DNA of 64,000 nucleotides from Takakia lepidozioides (Eukaryota; Plantae; Bryophyta), in the NCBI GenBank assembly GCA_030704615.1, contig CM060733.1, positions 11,098,001 through 11,162,000 of the forward strand. Direction: 5' to 3'. The notes beneath the pieces are model-generated. The model was not told the origin of the DNA. It saw only the letters and a list, made by a program, of their open reading frames with translations, and made no database searches. The position numbers and the translations under genes were made by a program. Shown piece after piece: positions 7,601 through 64,000 of this stretch. The first letter of the stretch is position 1, and each line of letters opens with the position of its first letter.

Positions 7601-8845
7601 AAATTACTCTGATGGCCGTTCCCAATATGAAGTTCACCATCGACCAGCGCTTGGGGCATCGGTGGGGTTCGTCTCCTCCTTTGTGAATAGTGAGATTTTT
7701 AGAAAAACATGGTTATAATCAGTGTGTCTTCCATGTTCACAAGCAAGGAGGTGTTATAGTTGGGGTGAAGTACAAGAAGATCAATGGCACTGATATGTAG
7801 TCTCCTCCTACAAGTAAACCTTGGGTAGCCAACAAAGAGGGTTGACACTGTACACTTAACACAGAGAAACGGGCCCATGGGGGGGGGCTGTGGGCTGTGA
7901 CCCACTGGTTTGGCATCTTAGCATGGGTCTGTTGGCTGGGGTTGAGTCGTTGAATCAACCGTGGTTTCGTCTGTCTTGGGACTGGGGCTCTGTCCCTCAT
8001 GGCTCTCACCATAAGGTTCCCCCTCGAGGACCTAAGTTATGCTTCCTTCCCAAAAAACGGAGGGAGGTGATCTGGTGAAAAGTTTGCACTCTCAGACGTA
8101 GTAACTAGTAACGTCTACATGGGGCAAATTTATGAAGAGAATACATATGAAGGTCAGAAGCAGGGAACAGGGAACCATTTTACAAATAAAATAAACAACA
8201 AACTCTGTACATATCATGTATGAGTTGTGCCATGAACAAAGTTGGGCGGTGTCCCTTGAGCCTTGTGCGGGGCGTGGGAAAGAGGTTATTTTCTGGTTTA
8301 CACTAGACATAGGATGGGAGTTGAATGCTCGTGCGAAGCTTGCCGGTACAATCCCCGGAGCTAACCGGAGAACGCGGTCAAATCCCCACCCCGACTTCCC
8401 TCGTGTATGCTTCACACCCATCCCAGGGTCCCACGCTCTATGTTCCCGCTGCAGCGCTCCCCGCTTCCCGCTCCCCTGTTATTGGAGCGGCGAACCAGTA
8501 AAACATGGGAGCAATAGCACAAGGGAGCCGGGAGTAGTAACAACAGGGGAGCGGCGGACACAGAGGAGCAAGGCGAACAGGGGAGCGGTATGTATGTGGG
8601 AACAGAGGAGTGGAGATTGGGAACAGGGGAACGGATCACCCCCACAATAATGGTCAATGTATTCAGCCACCAAGCTACCCGAGCTACCCGGGTTAGGGAT
8701 TTTACCAGTGTTGGTCTGGTATGTACAAAAATACGGGTATCAACCCGGTTATGCACCCGAGTATGGAAGCCCCTACCAGCCGGAAAGGAAATGCATAGAG
8801 TAACCTACATGTAGGGTATGATTAGGATTTCGGGGAGGCCGTTAC

Positions 8846-9572
8846 TGTCGCGCACCTCACTTCGGTAAGCTCCCCCTCAAGTCATAGTTACTCGCTTTGA
8901 TGTGCACGCCTGACTCCCAACCTGGCCGTCGGGCCAACTTGGAGCTTCGGCTGCTCACCGGGGCATAACGGTCCCCCTTTGTTCTCCCAAAGAACCCTCC
9001 ACCGATTTGGAACTAGGGGGAATTCCCTTTGGTAGTTGGCAGTCCGGAACAGCTCCCCACTCTTTGGTCGCTTTCCGGCTCGCTCGCTTACTCACTAGTT
9101 TTTGGTCACCAATGGGCTTGCACCGTTCTCGGGGTTATTACTCCCTATATATACTTCTGTAGCTGTCCGCGGGGGTTTCACAACCAGCCATGCCATTTTA
9201 TGGCGAACCACCACAAAAACCCTCGACTCCCGGTGATGAGTCGCGGTGAGTCTTGGCCCACTCACCACGGCCCCTATGGACCGTGATGAGTCCCAAGACT
9301 CCCCACGACTCCCACCACGAGGTCTCCGCCCCCATGGTGAGTCCTATGCCACCCCCACTAAGTCCCGCTAAGCTACCACCACCACTTGTGGAGCCACCCC
9401 CACCGCAACCCGGTGTGCGGGGCTCCACCTAGTGAGCGCCTCCGCTTCCCTGAGTGCCTTGGGCACTCAAGGGTGCTTCAGCCCCCCATACTTATCGCTG
9501 CCGCTGCCCCCACCACAGGGGCAGCCCCTCATGTGTCCCGACCCCCTGCCCTCAAGGCAAAGGGCCGCGACA
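8846..9572 (-). repeat. 3' LTR of chromovirus copy 1 (727 bp)
   Basis: TG...CA ends with 7-bp terminal inverted repeat; near-identical to 55756-56480 and 61952-62678. Confidence 0.95.
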
Positions 9573-10476
9573 CACACCCCTACCAACAGGGAGTCGATGT
9601 CCTCATCGACTTGTCCATTTTGTAGAAACGAACATCCAAGTTGTGGCGTCCCACATCAAGGAGTTTGTTTCCGTACCATGGCGTCCCATGGCAAAGAACC
9701 AAACCCCACACTTGACTCTACTCTCCACTAGCTAGTTCGGCCGACTTCCTCCAAGTCTCGGCCAAGGGTGGAGCCTCTCAAGCTCCTCCCAGTGCACTCT
9801 TCTTGGCCTACTTCAAGGCCAAGGAACGATCCTCCCCGAGGATCGAATCGCCTCACTGCAACAACATTGCTTGCGACCGCTCATGATGCCGCTTTGGGCA
9901 TCGCCTTGAGAAAGGGTTCACCTCGAACCCTCTTTGACTAGAAAGATAACCTTGAACCAACCGCGCGCCCCAATCACTACAATTGGGTCCGCCTTGGAAT
10001 GCTGGCCTGAGGTACGGGAACACACCGAAGCCGCACTACGACTTCGTCCGAGGCTACACGATTATAGTACGTGAACGGAAGCACGTAGCTTCCGCGTTAG
10101 CCCGCACTACAAGGCAACCCCCTCGGTAGCGCAGTTATAGTACGCGCACGCGCCAGGTGCGCACTAGCACGTGAACTCCCAAAGAAGGCGCAAGTTTCCT
10201 TGCCCCTTGGATGGGAGTCACCCGATTTCGGCACTGTGCAAACACACGATTAACCCAATTTACCTCTCCCACTTTTGTAAGCTAGCATGCATTCTACACA
10301 CTAGCCAACCATACCATGCATCACCATTCCAAACAAAATATGAAGCACAACATTTGAAAACCATTTCATTTAAAGCAAATTTTGTACAATACAAGTTTTT
10401 GCAATCGGATTCCTGAGCTAGCTAAGCTGGGCTAAGCATGCATTTCCTCCTCCACGCTCCAAGGTTGATGTCCCCA

Positions 10477-13400
10477 TCAACGCTTCTTCCGCTTTTGAGG
10501 TCGCCCTTCGAAAACTGCAACCGCCTCGGATGCGTTTCCCATTTCTGAGGCACGCACCCAAGATGCCTCCACATGATGATAGCCCTTCCATTTGACGAGA
10601 TACTCCGTTTCTCGGCTCTTGAACCTCCTCGACTTAAGTACTGCCTCCACCTCGTACTCAGGTTCATTTTCATGATCCAACAACACAGGTGGCGGACGCA
10701 ACACTTGATGCCGATTCGGACGCGCTTCATCTTTGAAGTAAGGCTTCAAAAGGGAGACGTGGAATACTGGATACACCTTGCTGTTTGCCGGCAGCTCCAA
10801 TTCATACACATCCTCATTCATAACCTTCCGGATGCGAAAGAATCCCGCATACAGAGGTACGAACTTTGGACTCACTTCCGGAGGTAGTCGGAAATTCTTG
10901 ATGTTCAACCAGACCTCCGTGCCTGCCTCAAACCTCACTTCCCTCCGCTTCCGATTCGCCTGCCTTTCATACCGTTTCCTAGCTTTGGCAATGTTGTACT
11001 TTGCGAGCTTCAACAAACGCTCACGTTCTTCCAGTACCGCCGCTACTACCGGTTCCTCAACGTCCTGGGCGGCCCAACTTGTCGGCACCAGAGGTGCTTT
11101 TCCATAGACCAATACGAAAGGGGAAACTCCCGTTGCGGAGTGTTCTGTGTTATTATAACAGAACTCTACCGCGTCTAAATGTTCCACCCAGTCTGATTGG
11201 TCTGCCGACACGTAATTCCGCAAGATCTGCTTCACTACGGAATTCACTCTTTCCGTTTGGCCGTCGGTCGTAGGTCGGAAGGCGGTGCTTATCTTCAGCC
11301 TCGTCCCCATCTTCTTCCAAAGTGTCCTCCAAAATTTACTCGTAAACTTTGGATCGCGGTCCGAGACAATATCCTTCGGGACTCCATGATGCTTTAAGAC
11401 GTTGGCGAAGTAAAGTCGCCATGTCTCATGCGCCATTGCCGTCTCCTTGGTGGGGATGAAATGGCCCATTTTACTGAACCTATCCACCACCACCATGATT
11501 GCATTGAATCCTTTTGACAGCGGCATATCAATCATGAAATCCATCGAGACGCTTTCCCAAGTCCCCTCTGGAATCGGCAAGGGCTGTAACAGCCCCGCTT
11601 GCTTTTTGTACTCGCTCCGGTTTTGTTGGCATGTCGTGCATGTCTTGACATACTCCTCTGCCTCCTCCCTGAGTTTGGGCCAGAAATACTCTTTCTTCAA
11701 GAGTGTCGCGGTGCGCTTGGCTCCGCCGTGGCCCGCAAGCGGGCCATCATGGCATTCTCTCAAGAGACTATCTCTGATCCATCCCTTCGGCACGTAGAGG
11801 CGCTTTTGCTTATACCGGAGCAGTCCATTTTGCAAATGGAACTGCGATTTAACCCCCATCCTCAAGTCTTGCATCACGGACTTCGCCAGCTCATCCTTCC
11901 GGCAAGCCTTCCGGATCTTCCTTTGGAGCGCCGTCTCGCCCCTATACACCAACATGAGCTGCTGTTTTCTACTTAAAGCATCGGCCACCACATTGTCCCG
12001 TCCCGGTTTGTACTGGATATCCACGTCGAACACCGCCAAAGTATCTTGCCACCTAAGTTGTTTTGGGGACAACTTGGGCTGCGTGGCAAAATACTTCACT
12101 GTGACATTGTCCGTGAACACCTTCACTGGGTTGGAACCAACATAGTGGCGCCAAAGCTCAAGGCAATGCACCACCACCTTCATCTCTTTTTCGTGCGTCG
12201 GCCACCGTCGCTCCACTTCATTCAGTTTCTTACTTTCGTAAGCCACTGGACGTCCATCTTGCATAAGTACACCCCCAATCGCGAAGTCCGACGCATCTGT
12301 ATGAATCTCAAATGGACGATCGAACTCCGGGATTTTCAAGACTGGAGCTTCCGCCATCCGCTGCTTCAATTCAGCAAAAGCTTGGCCACAAAATGTGTTC
12401 CATACCCAGACTTTGGATTTACACAGAAGGTCTGACAGCGGCCCCGCGATCTTGGCGAAATTTCTCACATACTTCCGGTAATAGGAGGCGAGTCCTAGGA
12501 AGGATTGCACTCCCGGGACCGAAGTCGGAGGCTCCCAGTCCAAGATCGCCCTCACCTTTCTGTCATCCATTTTGATCCCATCCTATGTAATCACATGCCC
12601 CAAGAACTCCACTTTCGTGACCCCGAATTCGCACTTTGAAGCTTTGGCGTACAGCTTCCCTTCCCGCAACTTTTGGAACACCCTTTTGAGGTGCTCCAGG
12701 TGCTCCTCCTTTGTTTTCGAGTACACCAAGATGTCGTCGATGTACATGATCACAAAGTCATCCAACCACTCCTGAAAAAGGCTGTTCATCAGCGTGGTCG
12801 CAGGTGCATTGGTGAGCCCAAAAGGCATCACCAAGAACTCATATGAACCATACCTTGTCCTGCACGCGGTCTTCTCCTCATCTCCTTCCGCCACCCGAAT
12901 TTGATGATAGCCGGAGCGCAAGTCGATCCGGCTGAAATACTTCGCTCCTGCCAACCGGTCGAAAAGGTTGTCGATCCTTGGCAAAGGGTACTGGTTTTTA
13001 ATAGTCACCTTATTCAAAGCCCTGTAATCGACACACATCCGCAGCGTCCCATCCTTCTTGTCTGCGAATAGCACCGGGGCTCCGTAAGGTGACTTACTCG
13101 GTCGGATGTACCCCTTTGACATTAGATCCTTGAGCTGAGTCTTCAGCTCGACCAACTCCCTGTGGCTCAACCGGTAGGGTGCCTTGGCAGGCGGTTCCGA
13201 TCCCGGTATCACCTCAATCTTGTGGTCAACTCCTCTTCGCGGTGGCAAGCCGCTTGGTAAATCCTCCGGCATCACATCCTGGTATTTCTCCCAAATCCCC
13301 TTGATCCAATCTGGGCTCGGCTCCCCATCGCCTTCTCCCTTCACTTCTCTAATGTAAAGCAAAAACTGGGGCTCGTGTGCCTCCTCCACGGCCCACTCCC

Positions 13401-15033
13401 TTGCTGACAGAAGGTTTATTCGCCCTCCCACGGATTTGGGCGTTTCCGACACTCGTAAGACCTTGCCACCATTCCCACATGGCAGCGTGACTACTCTCTT
13501 GCGGCCATCTATGACCACTCTGGATTTGCTCAAAAAGATCATCCCCAAAATGAGATCCACTCCATCGATCTCGCAGATGGTGAAGTTCTCAGGTCCCTCC
13601 CAACTCCCCAGTTGAAGAGGAACATCAAACGCCAACCTTGTCGCCAACTGTGGTTCTCCTTTGGCAGAACGCACCTCAATAGAGGCCCCCACGTCACTTG
13701 TCGGGAGTCCCAACTTTCGCGCCGCCGCCGGCGTCATGAAGGAGTGCGACGCTCCTGTGTCCACCAACAACGACACGTTAGTTCCGGATCTTATCCCATC
13801 CACGAACAATAACTGACTCCCTTTACGCAGGGCGCCAGTGTCCTGATACAACTCACAAGAATAGTTGCCTACCTTGCAAGTCCTGGCGACCACCGCTTCC
13901 ACCAAGCGACTGATGGTATCTTCCGACAGCTCCGTGGTTGCCCGAGTCATGTTCAATTGTCGAGGTTTTGTGCACTTCTTGGCCATGTGCCCGGGCTCCC
14001 CGCAATTGAAACACACTCCATCAAAGGTCGCCTTCTGTCCGCTATAAGCCGCTCCACCCGCTTTTCCTTTTGAAGCACCGGGTGCCGCCTTGACATGTGA
14101 AGGCCCTCCCTTCGATTTCCACGTGCCATTGTCGCCGCGTGGCCTATCCCACTTCTTTTCCGGTCGGAAAGAGTCACCTTCCCGCCGGGTCTTCTTGTGG
14201 TTCAGCTCCATACAGCCTTGTCTCTCACCCCTAGGGACATCCGAGAAACATTCAGCCCTCTCAATTGCCTCGTTCAAAGTCTTGGGTGGCTTCTCCTCCA
14301 ACTTCCGCCTGGCCCATGGGGCCAGTCCCGCCACAAAGTTGAAGACCATTTCTGGTTTTGCCATGTCCGCAACTTCGAGCAACAGCACATTGAAAGCCTG
14401 GACATACCCCCGAATGTCATCTGTTTGCTTCAAATTCCTCATCTTGTCCCGGGCAAGCCAGGACGCGTTGAGGGGCACAAACTGTCTCTTCATCAATTCC
14501 TTGAACCCACTCCAGTTCAAGGTTTCCGGGCTTGGACCTCGGTCGTGAAGGCGTTTCTGCCACCATTGTTGAGCATAGCCCCTCAAATAGGTGGGAGCCA
14601 CTTCCACCCGATCCTCGTCACTCAACTTGGCCGCCCGGAAATACTGCTCTAGCTCCAGGAGCCAGGTATTGAGTGCCTAACGATTTCGGACGCCCTCGAA
14701 GGTGTCGGGTTCCTTAGGCTTCACCTTAAACTTTGCCTTAGTGGAAGTGGCATTAGCCGCCTTCAACACGTCTTTCAACGTCCCGCCAAACTGCGCCAAC
14801 AACCCTTCCCAAAAGGCTGCCGGCATGGGAGGCATCTCTTGGTTTGTCGGAGCTCTCAAGGATTCCTCGGGCTCCGACTCCTCGGATTCCTCCCGCTCTT
14901 GAGCGACCTCGTTTTCGGAAACATGCATCGCTTCCTCAAACGGCCGCCTCGGTGACACGTCGCCCCCATCGGGCTCACCAGGATCATCATCTTTTGGGCC
15001 GTTCCGCTTTCGATTCGGCTTGCCCGACCCCAT
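10477..15033 (-). pseudogene. gag-pol polyprotein of chromovirus copy 1 (single frame, two premature TAG stops)
   Basis: ORFs 14677-15087, 12583-14625 and 10477-12570 share one frame; ATG at 15033. Motifs: zinc knuckle [14 protein letters not shown], protease LVDTGAS, RT YIDD, RNase H TDASD, integrase H..H/CxxC plus SMDF/SDRD/GQTER, and a class I chromodomain YEVEAVL...YLVKWKGY...SW. Confidence 0.95.
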
Positions 15034-15074
15034 GATGAGGCCAATCCCAAGGACGATCGCGTACTGAACTCTAA

Positions 15075-15086
15075 GCTCTGATACCA
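15075..15086 (-). promoter_or_regulatory. Primer-binding site (tRNA-iMet) of chromovirus copy 1
   Basis: TGGTATCAGAGC on the minus strand, 2 nt from the LTR end. Confidence 0.93.
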
Positions 15087-15111
15087 AGTGTCGCGCACCT
15101 CACTTCGGTAA

Positions 15112-15189
15112 GAGGTTATATATGCATGAGTTTATGCTTCAGCTTTGTGAGCTCGCATGAGCTTGTGCTTGTATTCTTCATCTTTATCA
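15112..15189 (+). repeat. Remnant (3' 78 bp) of the 5' LTR of the MTase-Gypsy
   Basis: GAGGTTATATATGCATGAG...TCTTTATCA matches 25995-26072 with about 3 mismatches. Confidence 0.85.
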
Positions 15190-15875
15190 CTCGAAAAAGA
15201 TGAGCTCGTATCTGTGAGTGCCAGATACGAGTTAGTTGTAGCACTTGTGGTTTTTGCTTGAGAATGAGAAAAACTAGGTTGTTATGCAAGGAGCACCGTG
15301 GAGCTCTTGGTTGTTAGAAGCGGAGGCGATGTGGGTTACGAGGTGGTAGACCTTGGCATTCGATCTTCAGCTTCAGAGATAAAAGCACCATGCTGCAGGT
15401 AATTCCAGAGCACCTTGATGGTTTCAGATTGTGTACATGCATGAGCAAGCACGATTGGGAAGAGGACCAGTCAAGAGCAGGTTATAGTGGCTTTGGTGGC
15501 AAAACTGAGAACTGGACTTGGGAATGCGAGCTTTCATTTTGTGAAGGATTGCAAGACCAAGTGAAAGGGCCGATTTGGCTTGGGGCAAATCAGTGCACTT
15601 TGTGGAGTATGTTGAGATTGGGTTTCAATCTCGAGCTTCAGCATTGAGAGGGCTCTTGTCATGGCAAGAGCAGGGCTGGAACAGGAGCTAAGAGGTGCGG
15701 CAAGGCCATGGAATCTGCACCTAGGGTTTCAGAGCTTGGAAGAAGAGCTCTTGCACCACAAGAAGAGTGTCTTGTGGCCTGAAATGTAAGCCTTAGGGTT
15801 TCAGGAGCTTGGCAAGGGCTATGGAGTGCTTAGTCTTGTCTTAGAGAGCATCAAGAAGCCAAAAAGCCAAGATAG

Positions 15876-16240
15876 GGGGCTGATATTACCTCTTGTGTGA
15901 AGAGGATGCATGTGTGGAGCATGCATGCAGCCCATTGAAGCTTCCATCTTGAAGCTTGGAGGGCAAGCAATGAAGAGGGAAGGGCTGACTTCTCTTATGT
16001 GAGGGCAACACATGTGTGGAGCATGCTTTCAGCCTGTTGAAGGCTTGTACTTTCAGGTTTGGGAGTGCAAGAAAGGAAACAAAGGGGCTGATTCTCTTGT
16101 GGTGAGAGTGGGGCATATGTGGAGCATGCCTTCAGTCCATTGGGGTTTTGTTTTCAAGCTTTAGAGAGCTAGAATGGAAGGGCTAGGGCAGGTTCCCACT
16201 TGGGTGAAAGAAAAGCACTTGTAGGGCATATGTGAGGTGG
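15876..16240 (+). repeat. Degenerate ~103-bp tandem repeat (3-4 units)
   Basis: GGGGCTGA...CTCTT.TG...ATGTG(TG)GAGCATGC..CAG recurs at ~15876, 15982 and 16084, with a weaker copy at 16186. Confidence 0.6.
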
Positions 16241-16530
16241 GGTTTCAACCTCAAGCCTAGATAGAGCATGGCTCTTGAAGTGGAAGGTGTAGGGGGCTGG
16301 AATAGGCTCTAAGAGAGATGCTATGGCCAAGGAAAACGCTTGAATGAGTGCTCACAAGGGCTGGAAGGACAGTACCAACACACAGATGGGAATGGTCAAA
16401 GGAGGACGGGAGATCTCCCATCGTACGATGTAATCTATAATAAGGATAAATCAGAACAACATTACATCCTTTCAATCTATCCCCTCTCACAGATGCCCTC
16501 ACAAACTCACATGTTGTTTAATGGACTAAC

Positions 16531-16623
16531 CTTTCTACAGCTAATCATCCATAGACTGATGGTCAAACCGAACGTGTAAACCAGATTTTGGAGCAGTATC
16601 TTCGCTGTACGATAAATTATCAG
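16531..16623 (+). pseudogene. Orphan Gypsy integrase fragment
   Basis: Translates [30 protein letters not shown], the integrase core around the catalytic Glu. It is chromovirus-like and unlike the element's own DGLAERVVQ motif. Confidence 0.8.
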
Positions 16624-16884
16624 GTTGTTTGCTATTGAGTTTAGTGGCGTGTTTGGGGAGTCTAAGTGAGAAAGAAGGCTTGGTTTGTGGCAACCATCTT
16701 CCTCATGGCTTAGGGCTACTATTGGTGGTGTGTGAGAGCCGAAAGAGCAAGAATACCTTGCTGATTTCTTCACAGCCGCCATAGCTCGGTGCAAAGAAGC
16801 CTAGAGTCCAAGAGACACAAACCCTAGCTTGGCGTGGCTAAACCCCTTGAAGAAATGGCTAAACTGCCATGAGTGGCCATGGAT

Positions 16885-17400
16885 GGGGCTGTGACGGGCT
16901 GTGATGGGCTGTGCCCTGTGGCCTATGGGGCTGTGAGGGGCTGTGACCCCTGTGACCTGTGTAGGGCTGTGACAGGCTATGGCCTTTGGGGCTGTGACCC
17001 CTGTGACCTGTGTAGGGCTGTGACAGGCTGTGGCCTTTGGGGCTATGACCCCTGTGACCTTTGTAGGGCTGTGACAGGTTGTGCTTGTGGCCTTTGGGGT
17101 TGTGATGGGCTGTGGACCTGTGGCCTTGGGGGCTGTGACAGGCTGTGCCTGTGGCCTTTGGGGCTGTGACGGGCTGTGGCCTTTGGGGGTTGTGATGGGC
17201 TGTGACAGGCTGTGACATGTGGCCTTTGGGGCCGTGAGGGGCTGTGACAGGCTGTGCCATGTGGCCTTTGGGGTTGTGACGGGCTGTGACGTGTGGCCTT
17301 GGGGGCTGTGAGGGGCTGTGACAGGCTGTGACCTGTGGCCTGTGGCCTGTGTGGGGTTGTGACGGCTGTGACCAATGATCTGTGTGGGCCTGTGTTGGTC
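16885..17400 (+). repeat. Minisatellite of ~10-12-bp GGGCTGTGAC / TGTGGCCTTT units with ~51-bp higher-order repeats
   Basis: Directly visible, e.g. GGGGCTGTGACCCCTGTGACCTGTGTAGGGCTGTGACAGGCT x3. Confidence 0.9.
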
Positions 17401-18287
17401 TGTGGTGGCCCGTGTTGACATGTGGACGGCCTATGCTAACTCGTGGGGGCACTAGTGGACTGCCTGAGGACTGACATGTGGTCTTGAAGGCCGAATTTTG
17501 ACGCTCGTGGAGGGCGGTTTGAGGAGTATCTTCATGATATTCCCATGGTCATGCAAATGAGGGAAGAGAGGAGAGGAAGAGTGTTGGGATGAGGGCATGC
17601 TAGGGTTAGGCATTGCTTTAGCTTCTCTTCCTCGTAGTTTTCCACCCTCTCATTAGGCCAAGACCTTTCTGTAGGTGGAGGCAAGAGTCAGTCCGGGTTT
17701 GGGCTGGGGTGTCATTGCAGGAGCAACACCGTGGACTTGTTTTTGGTGTGGGGGAGTTGTCGTTCTGATTTCTTGTGTTTGGATCCCCTCCATACCTGCA
17801 TGTTTGACTGTGCGCCATGTTAGTTTTGTGTGGGCGCTTGTTTTTATAGGTGATTGGTCCGGATTTGATCACCGGCCAGTCCTAGAGCATGCTGTCGATG
17901 GTGAGGCTGGGGTGATGACCAGTCAGACCATCATTGTTTCTCCTGTGGTGAGGTTGGAAGTGATGACCAGCCAACCATAGGAGTGCTTGCGGTGGATGCA
18001 GGTGTAGGTGTAGGCTATGTTAGGAACCTAGTATTCCAAACCATAAGCCGCAACAGGTTCTCTACCCGGTTACCTTGTGGAGAGGGGGTTAGGGACATGT
18101 TCATGACCGGAAGTGACAGTTTGTCAACACGGAGGTGCCACTAGTTGCTGGGGACAGTGCCGGTTTGAGCACTAGCAATACTAGTGGGTACACGAGACGA
18201 GGTGTGCGGTTTAGGCCACCTTCACCTCCTGTGTCTTCTACGGAAGGTTTTGATTCGGATTGTGAATCAGGATGACTCACACCGGCG

Positions 18288-19729
18288 GTGCAAGTTATTT
18301 CATTGCCATTGTTGTGGGACACAATGGAGGAGATGTATGGAGCTACCAAGGGGCCACAAAGGTACTCTGGGGCGGTGGGCACCATCGAGTTGGATGATTT
18401 TATCCAAGAGTTTGATAGTTGGTGTGATTTGCAGCAAATGCGCAATCCACAACTATTTACGCCTTTCATGGCATGGAAGGGGCTGTTTCAACACCTTGAG
18501 GGGCCGCCTATGGATGATTACCATGAGTTCAGGTGGGGGCATGAGGTTGAGATCGAGGAGTGGAGGATGTACTGGTCACCCGACTATGTCTCCATCACTA
18601 GGGGCACTAGAGCCACAAAGGGAGTGGCTACACTTGCCGCTGCACCGGCAGCTTCAGCAAGCAGCAGTGGGACTAGTGGGACTGGTGGTACCGTAGCTAC
18701 GACGTCCACTCAAACTACTGTTGCACCAGCACCAGTGGTGGTGCCTGCCTTCAACCCTGTTGTGGAGTTCTTCGAAGGAGCTACCAAGGGGTAAGGACAA
18801 AGAAGTTGAGGAGCTTGCAAAAGTTCCAACGGAAGCCTACTGAGAGCTTGAGGGAGGTTTTCACTCGCATGAGGCGCTTGATTAATGCAACCCAAGGGGT
18901 TACGGAGGCTCAGGTAGTCCAATTCTGGTATGGGATATTGGACAAAGAGCTGAGGAGAAGGGTGCGGGATGCAATTCTCCTACAAGCGGCCCAACCCACC
19001 TTAGCAAATGTGTTTTTGCTAGCAGAGCGGATAGAGCTCAACATGGTGGAGGAACGAGTGGTCATGGTGGGATTTGCTAAGGAGGCACCACGGGGTAGTG
19101 GTGCTCCTAGCCAACCACTACCTCAATGTGCTCAAGGCAACAAGGGGGCTCAGGTGAAGCCGAGGGAAGGGCAGAGAGGACCTCAGATGCAGGGGTCTCT
19201 CTTTTCATTTGCAGGCCAACAACGGGCGGAGGTGGTGTGTTGGACATGTGGAGGACCCCATGTCAAGAAGGATTGCCTAGAGGGAGGCAAAGGGTCGGCA
19301 CATGCACAGCCTGCACAGTTGCAGTGTGGGCATTGTGGCAAGCACGGGCATGGAGAGGCCCAGTGTTATGGTTTATATCCTGAGTTGCACCCAGGCCAGT
19401 TCCAAGGGAACAATGGTGGCCGGGGGCGAGGTGGAGTAGCCCAGAGAAGACGAGGTGGCCAGGCACGAGGTGCAGGCCAAGGGCAAGCTCAACATGGCCA
19501 AGGACGTGGAGGTCAGGGTGTTGACCAAGGCATGGCCAACCGGCTTCAGCAGCTAGAGCAGAGACTTGCTACCATGGCTACAGCTCAGGTGGTACCGGCT
19601 CCAAGGCCGGATGGTCCACCTCCTGCTCCCGAAGGAGGAAATATGGGAGGCATGGGATTCATGTGCGGAGCAGCACTACCACTAGTGCAGGTGGAGCCTG
19701 CTACAGCCGTGACTCGAGGAGCAGCATGA
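18288..19729 (+). pseudogene. gag of the MTase-Gypsy (frameshift near 18775; true start upstream and uncertain)
   Basis: Capsid-like segments (RYSG...LDDFIQEFDSW; FQRKPTESLREVFTRM...FWYGILDKELR), zinc knuckles CWTCGGPHVKKDC and CGHCGKHGHGEAQC, and an RGG-rich tail. Confidence 0.8.
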
Positions 19730-20204
19730 GTTCCTGAGCCACGAGGTGCAGAGGTGGAGTTGGATCCACAGCGTGGGGAGGCAAGCCATCAGGCTCGGCT
19801 TCCTCAGTCATTCACATTGGCAGAGACAGTGTCGACACCATCCATAGCACCTAGTTCTCGCCCGACTGTTACCGAGGCGGAGGTTACTATGCCATTGGGG
19901 AGAGCTACAGGGGTAGCACCACTTTATAGTGTTGCCAAGGCTACGGCAGCTAGTGTGCTGCTGGGACCGGCCACATCTGTGTGTCAGGCTCCATTGTTCT
20001 CGGCTACCATAATTGCGACGCCGGGGGTAAGACCAGCTGAGGTGTTCAGGCTGGCAGCTACACTCTGTGAGAGTGGGGAGGTTACTTCATCTTCTGCGGA
20101 GATAGTGGGAGGTGTAGTGCCGGAGGGATCCTCGGATTTGAGGGTCAAGACTGCCACGGCGGCACCATGGACCGGCAGGCAAGAGGTACCGGCCACTGCG
20201 GGTC

Positions 20205-20570
20205 TTGTTGGACTCGGGAGCTCAGCCATTGATGCTGGGTAGAGCTGTTATTGCAGGCTTGGGCCTCACGGAGGCGGATATGGAGCATTGTCCTTTCCAG
20301 ATACAGACGTCTCTGGGAGGATCGGAGCAGGCTCGGGGCATGACACGGCGTGAGCTGGCTATCAGACTATGGTCGGATCACCCTACAGATGGCGCAGTGA
20401 TGCGAGCCAAGGCCATTGTGACAGACGCGGTCTCATACGATGTCCTAGTTGGTGGGGCAATGTTGTACCCCATGGGCTTCACCCTGGATTTTTGGGAAGA
20501 ATCAGCTTCTTATAGGCCTGGATGGCAGTCAGGGGAGGGCCGGCGTGTGCAGCTCCCTGTGACGTTCATA
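20205..20570 (+). pseudogene. Aspartic protease domain of MTase-Gypsy pol
   Basis: LDSGAQP active site and downstream YDVLVG motif. Confidence 0.85.
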
Positions 20571-20924
20571 GGAGAAGTTGTGGTTGCCCAGCTGGGTAAG
20601 ATGCCGATACTAGCAGCATTCACAGCTGCAGTGACTTGGCCTGGAGAGTTGCTAGAGGGCAACGCTCATTCAGAGGATGACACACCTCCAAGAGAGCAGG
20701 ATGACATGTATGGTATGGCAAAGTTGCCTACCATGGTTGCTCAGACTCCATTGTGGGGCACGAGCAAGGATTTGCAGCGGGTTGCTGATCGACGGGTGCA
20801 ACAAGCCTGGATGGAGGCCTTTGTACCATCAGGAGAGGAGGAGAGTGCGGGGATTGCACCAGGACCACCTCAGTTGTCACCATTGGATACCACACCTATT
20901 GTGTGGTAGTATCCGGATGAAGAT

Positions 20925-21890
20925 ATTTGTCTTCTGGACTTGTTTGGCGGGATCAGCACCGGATTGGCTACTATGTTATAGGCAGGTGTACGAGTTCGGC
21001 GTTACCTGTATGTGGAGAGGGATGAGATTGCACGACGCGTTTCACTACGTCATGTTGCTCAGTTGGTGCAGCAGTACCCTGAGTTGTTGCCGTTGTCTGC
21101 AGTTCGTGGATATCAGCAAGCCTTGCCAGCAGACATTTCGTTGCTGGGGGTGCAAGATTTGGAGCGGGTTGGCTCCATTGATCTGGCAGTGGCAGGTTGG
21201 CCCTGCCAAGGGCATTTATCAGCCGGGCATGGCAATGGATTGCGAGACTCGAGGTCGGGTTTGTTTTGGGAGATGGTGCGGGTTTTGCGCCACTTGCAGC
21301 TTCATCAAGCTATATCTCCAGCATACATCTTGGAGAATATGCCACTGATAGGCGATTCTCGGGCTAGGGTGATGGCCAGTGTGCATCAAGTCCGGTCGTG
21401 GCTTGGGTCAGCAGTGTTGCTAGATGCAGCTACAGTGGGGTCACGGGTTCATCGTCCACGGCTATGGTGGACTAACCTGATGCCACCCGCACTGCTCAAG
21501 CGTGCATTTGATGGGGTGCAGTGGCCAGCACACCTCACAGTGGATAGCATTTTGGACAAAGGGAAGCACTCTCAGCGTGTGAGACACGATGACCGTTCGC
21601 CTTTAACAGTGGTCAACAAGGTGGGTCAACCACGAGTAGCATTACCTACACTGCTCACCTTCCCAGGATCGCATGCTTTTCAGGATAGTAGACCTGGCCT
21701 CCTGTGGGATGCTTAGTTGCAGCACTTAGTGGAGCCTAATGCTGACGAGCGTGAGCGGGCAATGGGTTTTACCACTGGTACCACGGCGGTGCCGTCTCTT
21801 TCTGAGGCATCACGTTGTCAGGTGTTGGGGCAAGCATTGGATCTCAATTGCTTGACCTGGATTATCAGCTTGGCTATGGCTGAGCAACGC
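20925..21890 (+). pseudogene. C5-cytosine DNA methyltransferase domain embedded in pol (DNMT3/DRM-like motifs in unpermuted order; two TAG stops)
   Basis: One frame: motif I LLDLFGGISTG (20931-20963), II YVERD, IV IDLAVAGWPCQG (PC at 21201-21206), V GLRDSRSGLF, VI YILENM (21333), VIII VHRPRLWW, IX ERERAMGF, X RCQVLGQAL. Stops at 20979 and 21714. Confidence 0.93.
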
Positions 21891-22289
21891 AGAATGCGGA
21901 GTACACTTCCCTCGATGGTCTCTCTACCTACCGAGACGGTACAGGCAGTGAGTGGGGGCGAGCATGAGAGGACCACGGGGTGCAGACATCCATGGCGCAC
22001 GTGGGAGGTGCTCGAGGTTCAGAGGGAGTTGGCAGCCAGGGCGGCGGTGATGGATGAGGTTGGGGATTTTTCTCGGGTTGAGGAAGTCCTCGAGGATGAG
22101 ATGATGGGGCAGGATGAGGCCTTGTCAATGACTAAGCAGGTAGGGAGTACTGCTCAAGAGGTTGCAACATAGCAACCACTGGACGCGTCCTCTACCTCTA
22201 AGCCCACTAGACTTAAGGTTGCAGTTACGGAGGATAATTGGGAGCCTGACATTGGACCCATTGTCATCGGAGGAGAGAGACGACGTATA

Positions 22290-23660
22290 CGGCGGTTCCT
22301 GAGGGCTTACATGAATTGCTTTGCCTTCAGTTTGAAGGACTTGGGAGCACTGAAGGGTCAAGAGATTCGTATTGAGTTGGCCACTAACACGCCAATCTTT
22401 CAGAGACCCTATAGATACAGTGACATGGAGAGGTCTTTGATTCAGATGAGGACTCAAGATCTTTAGGAGGCTGGTTTGGTGGAGCTCTCTGGTGGAGAGT
22501 ATGCTTCAGCCACAGTGATGCCAGCCAAGAAGGATGTCTATGGCAATTGGACGGAGAGACGTATGTGCGGTGATTACCGGCCTGTAAATCGTCAGACCAA
22601 GTCCGATAAGTATGCCATGCCAACACCAGAGGAGATCTTTGATGCCATCGGGCATGCTAAGGTCTTTAGCACTTTGGATTTACGATCCGGATATCACCAG
22701 TTGCCGATCAAGGAGGCAGACAAGCAGAAGACGGCATTCTAGGGGATCAATGAGCACGGCAATGATTGCCTATATCAGTGGCGGTTCTTACCATTTGGGC
22801 TTAAGAACGCTCCCTACAGAGTTTCAGAGAGTCATGGATAGGATTCTAGCAGGGGTGGACTTTGCTCGGTGCTACATAGATGACATCATCATCTTTAGTG
22901 CTACGGTGGAGGAGCATGACAGGTGGTATTGGAGCGCTTGAGAGCGCACGGATTGAAGTTGCATCCGGGGAAGTGCAAGTTTTTCCACAACCAGATTGAG
23001 TATCTGGGTCACATGATATATCTTGGAGGATTGGGGGTATAGCAGACTAAGGTAGAGGCCCATTGCACAAATTCCACGCCCCACGGATGTGAGCCGAGTT
23101 CGAGCTTTCATGGGGTTGGCAAACTATTATAGACGGTTTGTCAAGGGATTTAGTGCCATTGCAAAGGCTCTAACCAAGCTGACCAAGGTGGACCAGGAGT
23201 GGCAGTGGGAAGATGAGCAGAAATGAGCTTTTCAAGAGCTCAAGGCGAGGTTGACCTCGGCGCCTATCCTGAGACGACCTATCAGGGGGCGTCCTTTTCA
23301 GCTGCATACGGATTGGAGCATGCTGGGGCTTGGAGCGGTAGTCACATAGGTGGATGATGAGGGAAGAGAGTTCGTAGTGGCTTATGCTAGCCACTCGAGC
23401 AACGCTGCAGAGGCTAAAGTATAGCTCATATGAGGGAGAGTGCTTAGCTGCAGTGTGGGCCGTGGCACACTTCAGGTGCTATCTATATGACAATCTCTTC
23501 ACCCTTGTCATGGATCACCAGCCACTCAAGTGGTTGATGGAGTCAGACAAGCTTACGGGGAAGCTTGCACGGTGGGCACTCATACTCCAGGAGTATGACT
23601 TTTAGGTTGTGCATCGACCGGGTTTGGTCAATCGGGATGCGGATGGATTGAGTCGCAATC
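22290..23660 (+). pseudogene. Reverse transcriptase and RNase H of MTase-Gypsy pol (stops and frameshifts)
   Basis: [31 protein letters not shown] and CYIDDIIIFS; RNase H LHTDWS...GAV...VAYAS, YSSYEGECLAAVWAV...DHQPLKWL...LARWAL. Confidence 0.93.
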
Positions 23661-24053
23661 CATGCATGAGCCAACAAGATGACACTGGAGCTCGGTGGCA
23701 TGGTGAGACGGACGAGGAGATGGTGCCGGGATGGCACGCATCTGCATTTTTGTGTATCTTGGCATCGGGAGGTCAGGTTGGACCTGCAACACGGATGACT
23801 GTAGACGGAGTGTCTAAGGACCCTAAGGCTAGTGATGAGCCAGGTGGTGCCAGAGATATACATGAGGATTCGGCTGTGTTGGACTACCTCCGCATGGGAG
23901 ATACGGCATCCACTGTGACTGCCAGGGAGAGGGATCGGATCCTGCAACGAGCCAAGAGGTTCAAGTGGGAGGGGATACACCTGCTTCGAGTGTGGGAGGA
24001 TGGTCGGGTGAGGATCGTGCCTCACCCAACACAATGTGCACGGTTAGTGCAGC

Positions 24054-25110
24054 ATGCCCATGAGGAGTTGGGGCATTTTGGAATGCAACGCACTCACAGT
24101 CTACTGCAGGGGCAGTATTGGTGGCGTGGTATGCACACAGAGGTGCAACGGTTTGTGGTTAGGTGCATGGTGTGTGATAGGGTGTGTGCTTCATTCAACG
24201 CCCCTACACCTCAGTTGCATCCTCTTCCGATCATGGGATTGGGCTACAGGTGGAGTCTTGACTTCGCAGGACCTTTGTCATTGACTATGCGCCACCACAG
24301 ATATGTGTTGGTGATGGTGGAGCACTTCTCCAAGTGGATTGAGTTGGTTCCATTGCCTGACAAGGCTAGTGAGGGGGCTGCGTATGCATTCTTGGATCGT
24401 GTGCTTAGCCGATTCGGTGCTCCAGCTGAAGTGCTCACGGACCAAGGGAGAGAGTTCTTGGGGGAGTTTCAGGCTTTGTGTGATAAAGCCTTGATAGACC
24501 ACCGCACCACTTCTCAGGATCATCCTGAGGCCGATGGCTTGGCAGAGAGAGTTGTTCAGACGGTGAAGAGGGGTTTGCACCAGTATGGCTTGCAGAAGGG
24601 ACACCTAGGAGATTGAGATCTTCAGGTGCCTTTGGTTAGCCATGGGCTACAGGTTCAGCAAGCAAGCATCACTTGCCTCATTCTCACCATATTTCCTTCT
24701 CTTTGGCTGAGAGCCGGATTTGCCTGCAGCCATTCATAGGGACACTGCTCAAGTCCTTAACCTTGACGATCCGGACATGTGGGTACGTGCATGTGGTCAG
24801 CGTGCAGAGTTGTTCAAGAAAGTCATGCCCATGGCTTTTTGAGAACCTTGCCATTGCACAACACCGTGATACATTGAGGTATGCTACTATACGTGGTGGA
24901 GGATATCGTCCTGGGGTTTGGAGGTTTAGCCCGGGTGACTATGTTTATTTGCAGCAGACTGCTCCTACGACCCTGGATGTCACTGTAGGGCGTGTTATTC
25001 TGAGGGTTTGAGAGTTGTTTCCCTCAGGAGTCCTGATCTTGGAGGGTCGGGATGGCATGACTTGGAAAGAACATGTGCGTAATTGTGCGCCATGTCACCT
25101 TCCCAATGTC
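24054..25110 (+). pseudogene. DDE integrase of MTase-Gypsy pol
   Basis: HEELGH...CMVC zinc finger; WSLDFAGP, VLTDQGREF and DGLAERVVQ catalytic motifs; C-terminal FSPGDYVYL. Confidence 0.93.
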
Positions 25111-25156
25111 GATGGCAGAGTTGACCCAAACTTGGCAGTGGTACCTGCAGGTTTTG

Positions 25157-25303
25157 AGGTGTATGCTCTGTGGGTGTGCCAAAGGGGCAGCCACCATGCT
25201 GGTGTATGATCGATGCTCGAGAGGTTGGCATATGGGATGCTTGACACCACCTCTTGAGAGGGTTCCTGATGGAGATTGGTTATGTCCACACTGCTTGGGA
25301 TAG
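25157..25303 (+). pseudogene. PHD finger at the pol C-terminus
   Basis: RCMLCG...MLVYDRCSRGWHMGCLTPPLERVPDGDWLCPHC fits C4HC3 with the third Cys changed to Tyr. Confidence 0.9.
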
Positions 25304-25555
25304 TGGCAGTGGACATGACTAGAGGCAGCTAACAAGACATGGGAGGCCAAGCTCATAGGAGTCAATACACGAGATCCCAAGCACAGGTTGCAAGACGGCG
25401 ACTAACGATGGGGCAACTCTTGCACCCGGCCTCTTGATCTATCGAGTTTGAGTGTAGTAGGGAGAGTGGTGGAGGACTTAGTGAGGCTATGGTCACTATC
25501 ACATCTTGTGGCTACCTGGACTTAGAGGTACTTAAGCACCAGCTAGGGGGCCGAT

Positions 25556-26072
25556 TGTGTGGTCTAGTGACTGCCATAGTGGGCAACATAGTGGCAGCCT
25601 AGTGTCTGACTAGTTGTAGCCTAGTGGTTGGACTAGTGGCTGGACTAATGGTGGACTAGTGGTATACTAGTGTGTGGCGTGCACATGTGTTGTGTGGTTT
25701 TGGACAACGATGTAGTTGTGTAGCGATATGTATGCGCACGACAGTAGTCAAGTTATTTTACCACTAGTGTGAAACTAGCTAGGAAATAGCTAGCTTTTAC
25801 ATATTGACATTTGGGATTGGCCCAAGTGTCAATCCAGGGGTCAAGGCAGATTTAGGCCCTGGAGTGGTTATCTTCACGGCAAGCGTGGGAGGCTCATCTT
25901 TCTCGAGTTGAGCCTCACCGCGCCTAGCTATGGCGCCGAAGTGTGGATTCCCCATGGCGTGGGGTGCACTTGGCTTGACTTGTATTTGAGTGATGAGGTT
26001 ATATATGCATGAGTTTATGCTTCAGATTTGTGAGCTCCCATGAGCTTGTGCTTGTATTCTTCTTCTTTATCA
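25556..26072 (+). repeat. Putative 3' LTR of the MTase-Gypsy (517 bp)
   Basis: Follows AGCTAGGGGGCCGAT, starts TG, ends CA; its 3' end matches 15112-15189. Confidence 0.7.
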
Positions 26073-26073
26073 T

Positions 26074-26243
26074 TGTGTGGATTAGTGACTGCCATAGTGG
26101 GCAGCATAGTGGCAGCCTAGCGACTGACTAGTTGTAGCCTAGTGGTTGGACTAGTTGTGGACTAGTGGTATACTAGTGTGTGGCGTGCACATGTGTTGTG
26201 TGGACAGCGATGTAGTTGTGTAGCGATATGTATGCGCACGACA
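26074..26243 (+). repeat. Direct duplicate of the first ~188 bp of the LTR (25556-25743)
   Basis: TGTGTGG..TAGTGACTGCCATAGTGGGCA...TATGCGCACGACA occurs at both positions with two small indels. Confidence 0.9.
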
Positions 26244-26446
26244 CATATTTTGTGAGATTCTTGCTTTGGTTTTGGCTACGAAAGGGATCGCAATGAAGGT
26301 GGTTTGTTGGCTTTCAATGCAGCATCAAGCAAGGAGGCCGATTTAGGTATTGTTTTGAGCCTCTTGCCCATTTGTTGCTCGTTACATGCGGTTGAGTGTT
26401 GAATGCTTGTTTTATGGCAACTTTGTGACAAGGTTAGCTAGGGGAG

Positions 26447-28817
26447 ATGGATTTCTTCAATGCGTTAGAGTTCAGTGAGACTGAAACATTGTTGCTATCT
26501 ACTGGGGAGGATGTAGAGGACTTGGAGACAAGCGTGACAAGCGAGGAGGTCCTGCAAGTTGGTGATCAGGCGGAAGAGGACTGAATTGCCGAGGAGGAGG
26601 CTCTGTGGCGCCAGCGCTTGCAAGTTTTGGTCGCCAATAAGGGATTTTGGCTCCCATATCATAGAAGTTCTTAGTGTTGGGCATTTTTTGTCCTGAACGA
26701 TGCAAGTGCTAAGGTAGAGATGAATGAGACACAACTGATGAGGTGCATTATGTGTCATTCAATGGAGAATGCTCACAGCTCTAGTAACTCAACCAGAACC
26801 AGAAAAGGCTTTGTAAACTACAATCCAAATCATGGCATAACTGCAATGAGGAAACATGTCTCTAATGAACATGGATCTGATCTTGCAAAACACAAAGCCC
26901 ATAGGCAAGTTGTTGTAGATCAAGGTAGCAATAAACGTCAGAAAACCAAAAAACGATAGTCTGTGCCTCTGAGTGCTATCACTTCGTTCTTTGGCAGTTG
27001 TAGGCCATATAGGAAAGATAATCCTCCCCAGCTGAGGTTCATTGAAGATCTAGTGCTTCTGGTCTATAAAGGGTACATGCCCCTGTCAGTTGTTGAGAAT
27101 CCCTGGCTCCGCAGATTAATCATGAGACAGCGTGGTCAGGTTGTATTCCCTAGCAGAAAAACAGCTTGTGAAAGACCATCTACCTGCTTTGTTCAAGAAA
27201 ACGATGGACACATATGTTTTACCTGCCATAGCCTCTGCATCCACCGTGTCTTGCTCCTTTGACTTGTGGATGTCAAGATCAGGGCATGATACCTTTGCAC
27301 TTATGGTAAACTTTATCAACGAGGTTTGGTGTCCATGCCATATTACAGTTGGTATTTTTGAAGCTCCATATACATCTGGACTTGCTCTTGCAGCCCAAGT
27401 GAAAGCTCTGCTGGCTCAATTCAAGCTATCAGACAAGGTGATAGCTTATATAAAGGATGAAGGGGCTAACCTTGCGACTTTGCAATCTGCCCTAACTTCA
27501 GTGGTGAAATGTGATCCTTTGAAGCTGTCAGAGCCCTATCCAGGGTCTTGCTTTGGACATGCCATATCTAAGGCATACCAATACGCAACAAATGAGGAGA
27601 AGGTCAGTGGTGGTATGATTGAGGTGAGCTTGAACGAGGCTCAGGCAGCATTGCAAAAAACCATCACTTGGACGAAGAAAAGTGGTAAGGGCAAGTTGGA
27701 GTGGGAGAATGTCTGTGTGGATGCAGGCCTGCCCAAGAGAAAACTCAGGACCCCTGTCAAGACAAGATTTGCATCGAAAGTCATTATGTTTCAGGAGACG
27801 TTGGCGTATGCTAATGCCATCAATTTTTGCTACACACGACAATCTGCTGCCTTGCAAGCCAGGGTTCCCAGTGGGTGGACATGGGCCATAGCCAGAGCCG
27901 TGGATGACACTTTGACACTTGTAGTGCACCAATGCATTCTGAACCAGCGAAGGGGTTACTGGCTGCTCTCAGATGCCCTCTTAGCTGGCTTGGCTATCAT
28001 GACGGAGATTAGGAAGATTGTGGAAGTAAGGACAACTCATGTGCCATGCTTACAATATGGATCTTTTGATGCGGAGATAGAGTTGCTTTATGCTCGCATG
28101 GCCCTCCAAGTCACAGAGGTTCTTCACCCATTTCTTTCATTTGCTGAATATTTCATTGAGAACAAGGCACATAACATGCTAGCCTTAATGTTGGATCCAC
28201 GGTTCAAAGGCTTACAGTGCATTGCTGATTACATTGGTAGGATGTCAGCTGAACGTCTGGTGCAAGAATATGATTCAGTTGTATTGCTGCCACTATTGAC
28301 CACTGTGATTGAGCACTTGAACCCTAAAGGTGGCACAGCTCCGCATCCACCCACTCCTGAGCTACCCTCGCATGGATTGTTTGGTAGGGCTGCCTCCACT
28401 GAGGAGGCCAGTGAGGGCTTATTGAAGGCTGAGCTTTCTTTACTCCGACGCTTTCCCGTTGACAATGAGGAGAAACTGGATCCAATGAAATGGTGGTTTG
28501 AGCATGAGACAAGGTTCCCTAATGTTGGGTGGTTGGCTCGTCAAATTCTTGGAATACCTGGTTCTCAGATTGAGACAGAGAGAATTTTCTCCATGGCAGG
28601 TGTGCTGACTGCTCTTAGACGATGTCGTCTGGGGGTGGATAATCTGGACAAATTGGTAATGGTTTACAAAAATTGGCCCAGTGATGCCCGTGTTGATTGT
28701 AAGCTAGTCGAAGCAGGAATGTTCAAGGACTTCTTGGAGGATGAGGACATACTAGTTGACGAGAATGAGGAGCTGATTGAGGAGGCAGGGCTGTTTGAGA
28801 ACGACGAGTTGGGGTAG
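26447..28817 (+). pseudogene. hAT transposase (BED finger, DDE core, dimerisation domain), disrupted in the 5' part
   Basis: BED finger (CWAFF...CIMC...TAMRKHVSNEH); SFDLWMS, IKDEGAN, CFGH, KTRF and LDPRFK; C-terminal KWW...FPNVGWLARQILGIPGSQIETERIFS. TAG at 26957 and a frameshift near 27150. Confidence 0.92.
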
Positions 28818-55755: not shown

Positions 55756-56480
55756 TGTCGCGCACCTCACTTCGGTAAGCTCCCCTTCAAGTCATAGTTA
55801 TTCGCTTTGATGCGCGCGCCTGACTCCCAACCTGGCCGCCCGGGCCAACTTGGAGCTTCGGCTGCTCACCGGGACATAACGGTCCCCCTTCGCTTCCCTC
55901 TAAACCCTCCACCTAATTGGGACTAGGAGAATTCCCTTTGGTAGATGGCAGTCCGGAACAGCTCCCCACTCTTTGGTCGCTTTCCGGCTCGCTCGCTTAC
56001 TCACTAGTTTTTGGTCACCAACGGGCTTGCACCGTTCTCGGGGTTACTACTCCCTATATATACTTCTGTAGCTGTCCGCGGGGGTTTCACAACCAGCCAT
56101 GCCATTTTATGGCGAACCACCACGAAAACCCTCGACTCCCGGTGATGAGTCGCGGTGAGTCTTGGCCCACTCACCACGGCCCCTATGGACCGTGATGAGT
56201 CCCAAGACTCCCCACGACTCCCACCACGAGGTCTCCCCCCCATGGTGAGTCCTATGCCACCCCCACTAAGTCCCGCTAAGCTACCACCACCCCTTGTGGA
56301 GCCACCCCCACCGCAACCCGGTGTGCGGGGCTCCACCTAGTGAGCGCCTCCGCCTCCTTGAGTGCCTTGGGCACTCAAGGGTGCTTCAGCCCCCCATACC
56401 TATCGCTGCCGATGCCCCCACCACAGGGGCAGCCCCTCATGTGTCCCGACCCCCTGCCCTCAAGGCAAAGGGCCGCGACA
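55756..56480 (-). repeat. 3' LTR of chromovirus copy 2
   Basis: TGTCGCG...CGCGACA; by eye about 11 substitutions and one small indel versus the 5' LTR. Confidence 0.95.
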
Positions 56481-61896: not shown

Positions 61897-61951
61897 GATG
61901 AGGCCAATCCCAAGGACGATCACGTACTGAACTCTAAGCTCTGATACCAAG

Positions 61952-63998: not shown

Positions 63999-64000
63999 CG

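Follow-up and report, generated by a model that had tools for sequence, protein, structure and literature searches.

What is a cytosine methyltransferase doing inside a retrotransposon of a bryophyte, does it belong to the element or to the host, and how would the element express it? The question is raised by a stretch of 64,000 nucleotides of the Takakia lepidozioides genome (GCA_030704615.1, contig CM060733.1, positions 11,098,001 to 11,162,000 of the forward strand), here called the window, whose own numbering we use throughout. An initial annotation, made from the letters alone, had placed a C5 cytosine DNA methyltransferase (DNMT) between the protease (PR) and the reverse transcriptase (RT) of a Ty3/Gypsy retrotransposon at 20205-22742. 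We are confident that positions 15112-26243 hold a single, dead Ty3/Gypsy-type retrotransposon that belongs to the Gypsy-DNMT3 kind, first described as KnitGypsy-Dnmt3 in Klebsormidium nitens, and that its family is high-copy in the bryophyte host. On the plus strand, the coding order is Gag, PR, a DNMT3-like methyltransferase, the sequence TAG CAA CCA, RT, RNase H (RH), integrase (INT) and a PHD finger, and the element is bounded by split direct repeats in the order A-internal-B-A-B, not by plain long terminal repeats (LTRs). The element extends the host range of a known kind to land plants; it is not a new class.

The methyltransferase domain and its place in the element

Translation reveals a single frame from 20142 to 22740 with stops only at 20907, 20979, 21714, 22170 and 22464, all of them TAG, which agrees with what the initial annotation had read over 20205-22742. 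Pfam searches were run on the separate pieces between these stops. The protease region comes first (20142-20906, DSG at 20211-20219); its Asp_protease_2 match on 20205-20906 is weak (E 0.075), the region is 48% identical to the PR of relatives from Calypogeia fissa (L004) and Sphagnum troendelagicum (L007) and 34% to that of a metagenome contig (L009), and the related protein P0158 has Asp_protease_2 at the equivalent place. The DNMT domain follows at 20910-21900. Its piece at 20982-21713 matches PF00145 (DNA_methylase) at 35.5 bits, above the cutoff of 22 (E 9.5e-9), so that the Pfam check proposed in the initial annotation comes out positive, and each of the ordered motifs quoted there is found in the translation: LLDSGA in PR, then LLDLFGGISTG, AGWPCQG, GLRDSRSGLF, ENM, HRPRLWW, ERAMGF and LGQA. 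The alignment shows the C5 motifs I to X of the window copy and its relatives in the canonical, non-permuted order, unlike those of DRM. Motifs I, IV (PCQ, with the catalytic Cys), VI (ENV), VIII (RxR), IX and X are at least 90% conserved across 57 divergent sequences. Chance is excluded by the number of matches to the 244-residue DNMT piece: 1,737 representative proteins at E<=0.001, 489 of them at E<=1e-10, many being polyproteins of 1,000-3,400 residues.

In comparison with solved structures, both the sequence of the methyltransferase and its predicted fold are DNMT3-like. Against the PDB, the family profile finds human and mouse DNMT3A, 3B and 3C at E 1e-18 to 1e-12 (DNMT3A best, 1.2e-18, 70 bits), then the bacterial enzymes M.HaeIII (42 bits) and M.HhaI at about 1e-10, plant DRM2 at about 1e-8 (35 bits) and DNMT2 at about 1e-6 (28 bits). 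P0168, an intact relative sharing 69% identity with the window piece, was modelled by AlphaFold (AF2) with a mean predicted local distance difference test score (pLDDT) of 90.6, and the top 50 PDB structures that Foldseek returns for this model are all catalytic domains of DNMT3A, DNMT3B or DNMT3C, with template modelling scores of 0.80-0.84 by target. PWWP and ADD, accessory domains of DNMT3, are absent in the Pfam searches, and the protein atlas search gives generic DNA_methylase clusters only.

Would such a domain methylate DNA? It could instead be an RNA methyltransferase, a binder of DNA or chromatin, or a DNMT3L-like regulator of host enzymes. Counting against an active enzyme, and for these alternatives, the only published activity test of the family, with the DNMT domain of Klebsormidium nitens in yeast, detected no methylation, a result that its authors did not regard as decisive (PMC5890265), and the lack of PWWP and ADD points the same way. 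Human DNMT3B, however, failed in that same yeast assay (PMC5890265); moreover, the catalytic motifs are retained at the level given above over all 57 divergent sequences, and the DNMT3A-like fold is predicted with confidence over the whole catalytic domain. We regard a role without DNA methylation as improbable.

The pol of ordinary plant Gypsy elements lacks a domain of this sort, and a dead copy by itself excludes nothing. The methyltransferase might accordingly be host cargo captured by this copy or a small subfamily, or a nested insertion, with no working part in the element. Given the relatives, we find this scarcely credible. DNMT, RT, RH and INT are collinear in seven of them: two contigs of the ENA sample ERZ25070695 (L001, L002), chromosome DNA of Calypogeia fissa (L004), a chromosome of Sphagnum troendelagicum (L007) and two JGI metagenome contigs (L009, L012), where a PHD finger follows; and K. 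nitens (L006), in which a gene with zf-CCHC and DNMT is followed by RT-RH-INT in the same frame. A fragment from Marchantia polymorpha (L008) carries PR and DNMT only. The PHD finger is seen also in L001, L004, L007 and L012 and in most distant relatives. The domain thus holds the same position in more than eight loci from different species and samples, and in two metagenome polyproteins, P0047 and P0158 (2,188 and 2,327 residues), zf-CCHC, PR, DNMT, RT, RH and INT share one uninterrupted open reading frame (ORF). Captured cargo or a one-off insertion is ruled out by the collinear relatives, and the 489 representative clusters that match at the stricter threshold point the same way.

Constraint was assessed by codon comparison (Nei-Gojobori) of the window copy with L001, L002 and L004. 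Non-synonymous differences per site (pN) are 0.18-0.22 for DNMT, 0.16-0.18 for RT and 0.15-0.19 for INT; since the value for DNMT is close to those for RT and INT, the methyltransferase is as constrained as the core enzymes. Synonymous differences per site (pS) are 0.76-0.83 for DNMT and 0.62-0.90 over all pairs, and dS is undefined or above 1.3 in every pair. Because synonymous sites are saturated between the copies compared, dN/dS is bounded rather than measured, which takes some weight from the argument; of the dN/dS comparison suggested in the initial annotation, the closeness of pN to that of RT and INT stands and the ratio itself is not computable. By these sequence comparisons the methyltransferase is an old, selectively maintained domain of the element with all its catalytic motifs. 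The initial annotation had taken it for an intronless, true element domain and not cargo, and had named the absence of the domain from other family members as contrary evidence; its view holds, and the relatives carry the domain at the same place.

The stop at the methyltransferase/reverse transcriptase junction

The initial annotation had counted all five TAG codons as breaks in one reading frame from PR to RT, with the methyltransferase fused in frame inside pol. Four of them are indeed lesions, being sense codons in relatives: the TAG at 20907-20909 (lesion 1) corresponds to CAG, GAA or GAG, that at 20979 (lesion 2, within the DNMT domain) to CAA or CAG, that at 21714 (lesion 3, likewise within the domain) to a codon for Q, R or C (TGT), and that at 22464 (lesion 4, within RT) to TGG, TTG or CTT. 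Position 22465 is G in most other copies in run X1 of the organism, giving TGG. The fifth TAG, at 22170, is conserved in relatives and is of another nature.

An acidic, poorly conserved linker (21901-22169) closes the first frame, ORF1, and at 22170-22178 it is followed by TAG CAA CCA, a conserved putative leaky-stop signal. The same junction reads TAG CAA TCA in L001, L004 (Calypogeia), L009 and L012, TAG CAA TTA in L002 and TAG CAA CCC in L007 (Sphagnum). Every bryophyte-clade copy compared has the stop, CAA and two pyrimidines at the homologous point of the linker, and TAGCAA is an invariant block of the six-copy alignment in a linker otherwise poorly conserved. In L012 the junction TAG is the sole stop in 1,363 codons, from DNMT through the end of the PHD finger. 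DNMT and RT are in the same frame in the window, L001, L004, L009, L012 and L006, and L009 has them as two long ORFs of one frame. Among plant viruses, tobamoviruses included, UAG-CAR-YYA serves as the type I leaky-stop signal; CARYYA also acts on UGA, and UGA-CGG is the type II signal (PMC3542737). This pattern marks the TAG at 22170 as something that the family has conserved, rather than as damage. The conserved TAG-CAA-YYN separates RT from the DNMT, which is the C-terminal part of a Gag-PR-DNMT frame, and the description "fused in frame inside pol" does not hold. We infer from the same pattern that ORF1 encodes Gag-PR-DNMT and that RT-RH-INT-PHD would be made by readthrough.

A related arrangement is seen in the Klebsormidium clade, where in three divergent representatives the ORF ends at the same residue, 28 residues after the start of motif X. 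The stops are TGA CAA TTC (K. nitens, L006:4894), and TGA CAA TTA and TGA CGG (L010:1291, L011:2390). All three contexts are known to be leaky. The published KnitGypsy-Dnmt3 family probably uses readthrough too, with its UGA about 28 codons past motif X, whereas the UAG-CAA-YYA stop of the window lies about 90 codons past it.

Could the stop at 22170 instead be the end of an ORF, with splicing, reinitiation or a subgenomic RNA giving access to the next one, or be an ancestral lesion shared by a dead lineage? We consider this unlikely. Some observations favour it: a Marchantia gene prediction, P0388, bridges the junction with an intron that spans the linker and the stop, and the ORF of a Trinity transcript, P0341, begins at an ATG just past the junction. 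Two further points count against a leaky stop: the CCC of the Sphagnum copy fits the motif YYA imperfectly, and relatives from Closterium and the GROS metagenome have no stop at the junction at all, so that a leaky stop is not universal. On the other side, ORF1 and ORF2 share a frame in all copies except where a frameshift intervenes, the six bases behind the stop fit CARYYA in 7 of 8 copies, the exception being L007, and form the best-conserved block of the linker, and the Klebsormidium clade has other stops, again in known leaky contexts (UGA-CAA-UUA, UGA-CGG). A shared ancestral lesion is hard to reconcile with L012 and L009, which are otherwise open. Readthrough of a conserved leaky stop remains the interpretation that we prefer.

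If readthrough operates, most ribosomes would stop at UAG and release Gag-PR-DNMT, and a minority would read on and add RT-RH-INT-PHD. Since the DNMT precedes the leaky stop, it would be made in Gag-like amounts. It would probably enter the particle within the Gag-containing precursor, where it may methylate the new DNA of the element or its surroundings (methylation of the new cDNA or of the insertion site, as put forward in the initial annotation, is likewise a supposition), and the PHD finger on the integrase may steer integration by reading histone H3 tails. The window copy itself is incapable of any of these steps. The expected stoichiometry is what changes: the methyltransferase, lying ahead of the leaky stop, would be as plentiful as Gag-PR instead of sharing the scarcity of RT. 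The arrangement recalls the UAG-CAA-UUA of tobamoviruses and the gag-UAG-pol of gammaretroviruses, in which an in-frame UAG followed by CAR-YYA upstream of the polymerase keeps the polymerase scarce (PMC3542737). Unlike those, the window signal belongs to an LTR-type retrotransposon and stands after protease and DNMT and not after Gag.

Relatives and known systems

Capture of a DNMT3 by a Gypsy element was reported for KnitGypsy-Dnmt3 of K. nitens and called specific to that lineage (PMC5890265). The initial annotation's reference to this work (de Mendoza et al. 2018) is correct, and the architecture is the same. Both elements have Gypsy-type RT, RH and INT, and in both an intronless DNMT3-like domain stands between the Gag-PR part and RT; both have split, DIRS-like direct repeats, KnitGypsy-Dnmt3 being described in the legend of Fig. 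4c as having a DIRS-like repeat structure with Gypsy domains (PMC5890265); in both the DNMT appears to be under purifying selection (in the window, pN is low and pS saturated); and in both a stop in a leaky context directly follows the DNMT. The differences are that the window host is a bryophyte land plant and not a charophyte alga, that the window DNMT is only 35% identical over the whole piece to that of K. nitens (P0097, GAQ93235.1; E 1.1e-29) and falls in a separate starred clade of the tree, and that the KnitGypsy-Dnmt3 text makes no mention of a PHD finger or a recoding stop (PMC5890265). Retrotransposons encoding a DNMT are also known from Symbiodinium, namely SymbioDIRS-Dnmt3 and SymbioLINE-DNMT (PMC5890265); unlike the window element, which has a DDE integrase, these are built on tyrosine-recombinase DIRS and LINE backbones and represent independent acquisition.

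A 2025 paper and a 2026 preprint cite the KnitGypsy-Dnmt3 report for "streptophytes" only. In the literature searched, with Repbase and Dfam outside its scope, Gypsy-DNMT3 is described for K. nitens only and for no land plant, and the Marchantia gene models of this family are named in none of the papers. The novelty suggested in the initial annotation is overstated, the kind being known from KnitGypsy-Dnmt3 and pieces of the family already existing as gene models. Such undescribed pieces occur in Marchantia polymorpha, M. paleacea, Calypogeia fissa, Riccia and Sphagnum. Those annotated as host genes include P0402 (Mp_2g26090) and P0388 (MARPO_0091s0058), both with DNMT, RT and RH in order, as well as P0179, P0202 (Marchantia paleacea) and P0172 (Sphagnum), whose UniRef name is "DNA (cytosine-5-)-methyltransferase". 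DNMT3 paralogue counts and plant methyltransferase trees can be contaminated by element pieces of this sort.

Domain mapping of the long matches reveals two architectures: a minority have DNMT-RT-RH-INT, as in the window, and the majority RT-RH-DNMT-INT-PHD. The latter is carried by P0017 and P0154 of Scenedesmus sp. PABB004 and by about 70 metagenome proteins, and we find no description of such elements in the literature searched. The pol of Scenedesmus sp. PABB004 (KAF8056149.1) and its metagenomic kin resemble the window element in having a related DNMT3-like domain, Gypsy RT, RH and INT, and a C-terminal PHD finger; their DNMT, however, lies between RNase H and integrase, that of the window between protease and RT. 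Among the matches listed, the chlorophyte and metagenomic DNMTs are 34-47% identical to the window DNMT (E 1e-26 to 1e-46). A quick IQ-TREE analysis of 142 DNMT rows, with support by the Shimodaira-Hasegawa-like approximate likelihood ratio test (SH-aLRT) and with no host DNMT3, DRM, CMT, MET1 or DNMT5 references in it, puts all DNMTs of the RT-RH-DNMT-INT order in one starred clade (SH-aLRT 96) that includes none of the DNMT-RT order. The window DNMT is in a starred clade with Calypogeia and Sphagnum (99), and the Klebsormidium and Closterium DNMTs form other groups, outside the chlorophyte-type clade. For the K. nitens copies, a placement among such host references has been published (PMC5890265).

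The same architecture in Closterium, Marchantia, Calypogeia, Riccia, Sphagnum and the bryophyte host, together with the sister architecture of chlorophytes, indicates that the capture is old and has long been maintained, and such persistence is an argument that the element profits from the enzyme. How far can this be carried? DNMT-plus-PHD Gypsy elements might constitute one ancient lineage of green plants, with PR-DNMT-RT in streptophytes and RH-DNMT-INT in chlorophytes, which has lasted from charophyte algae to mosses and liverworts, with activity continuing in some bryophytes, a tobamovirus-type leaky UAG giving a Gag-like excess of DNMT over RT; the family in the host would then be a second, transposon-owned source of de novo methylation that shapes the epigenetic state of the elements and the host methylome. 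Taken as a whole, this scenario is tentative, and we hold it to be doubtful rather than probable.

Two of the relatives deserve separate mention. The contig L012 (JGI 3300081889) has an apparently intact DNMT/RT-RH-INT-PHD frame at 2-4090 and then, at 6342-6952, the beginning of another element of this family; with an ORF2 that shares 84% identity with a protein of Calypogeia fissa, the contig probably comes from a leafy liverwort. P0341, a EukProt Trinity ORF of 1083 residues that starts after the junction, is a complete RT-RH-INT-PHD, 67% identical to ORF2 of L012. As it comes from a transcriptome, some relative is transcribed.

The window copy and its surroundings

Downstream of the junction, RT occupies 22179-23354 and is collinear with ORF2 of L012 (RVT_1 on 22467-22739, E 5.9e-6), with the premature TAG at 22464 and a frame change near 22795. 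RNase H follows at 23378-23602 (PF17917, RT_RNaseH, 73.4 bits, match 23384-23602), and then the integrase, with an H2C2 zinc finger and a DDE core, at 23606-24613 (PF17921, 50 bits; PF00665, rve, 51.8 bits; match 23609-24613). The C-terminal PHD finger lies at 25160-25294 (PF00628, 34.3 bits, cutoff 24). The succession of RVT_1, PF17917, PF17921 and PF00665 confirms the Ty3/Gypsy order of pol. A DIRS identity was considered and rejected, as the rve DDE integrase is present and no tyrosine recombinase was matched in Pfam; only the repeat layout is DIRS-like.

Upstream, the Gag-like region (18117-19726) is decayed and changes frame. Its parts at 18276-18791 and 18806-19726 match, by tblastn, the region upstream of PR in the Calypogeia (L004) and Sphagnum (L007) copies with 35-69% identity, its N-terminal motif is shared with the second element on L012, and no Pfam family matched it. 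The long leader (15190-18116) includes a GGGCTGTGAC-rich tandem array at 16885-17417, detected by Tandem Repeats Finder and self-BLAST, and its ORFs have no Pfam match. The array has periods of 10-74, and the leader, at about 3 kb, is unusually long; about 1.1 kb separates A1 from gag in the Sphagnum copy.

What are the ends of the element? Repeat searches and sensitive BLAST find no plain LTR pair in the window, only split repeats, and the two identical long LTRs by which Ty3/Gypsy LTR retrotransposons are defined are lacking in this element. The Sphagnum copy (L007) has the clean form A1 - internal - B1 A2 B2; its A unit measures 340 bp and its B unit 115 bp. In the window, B1 lies at 25554-25743 and is 87% identical to B2 (26072-26243), which is the 3' end of the element, and the portion of A2 that A1 matches lies at 25995-26072 by BLAST. 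A1 itself (15112-15189) comprises only the final 78 bp of the A unit, 96% identical to A2, and adjoins a neighbouring element of the minus strand; no further A sequence is present anywhere in the window, including beyond that neighbour. So short an A1 may reflect truncation or another repeat boundary.

The copy is dead, given the four premature TAGs (20907, 20979, 21714 and 22464), five frameshifts between 22795 and 25153 and a 5' repeat of only 78 bp. Compared with the intact frame of L012 it is collinear over 21168-25294, with frame changes near 22795, 23416, 24633, 24836 and 25153, and these are positions where many other copies in run X1 are without one letter. The initial annotation had likewise judged the copy dead and allowed for intact members, and L012, L009 and P0158 look intact. 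The family is very abundant in the host organism: 51,450 contig pieces of run X1 fall on 5.2 kb at 90% likeness or more, a figure of depth and not of copy number.

The minus-strand neighbour is an LTR retroelement of a different kind with two copies in the window, at 9017-15100 and 55756-62734, which are 94-98% alike in most blocks and 77% in one. The first has ORFs at 10477-12570 and 12583-14625 and adjoins the 5' end of the DNMT element; the second has a spacing of 6.2 kb between its terminal repeats. In all three retroelements of the window (8000-28000 and 56000-64000) G exceeds C on the sense strand, with an absolute GC skew of about 0.10-0.27. Just 3' of the DNMT element, on the plus strand at 27132-28817, an ORF of 561 residues with a hAT dimerisation domain is probably a hAT transposase. 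Two host genes lie on the minus strand. One at 36725-40483 encodes a G-type lectin S-receptor-like kinase (B_lectin, S_locus_glycop, PAN and kinase domains), and an exon of a long-PIN auxin efflux carrier at 45135-46649 shares 60-70% identity with PINs of mosses and liverworts, and no protein in the database exceeds 70%. In a quick single-gene tree, which tentatively puts the host on the moss side, this PIN is sister to all mosses sampled (98), and the liverworts form a separate clade (100).

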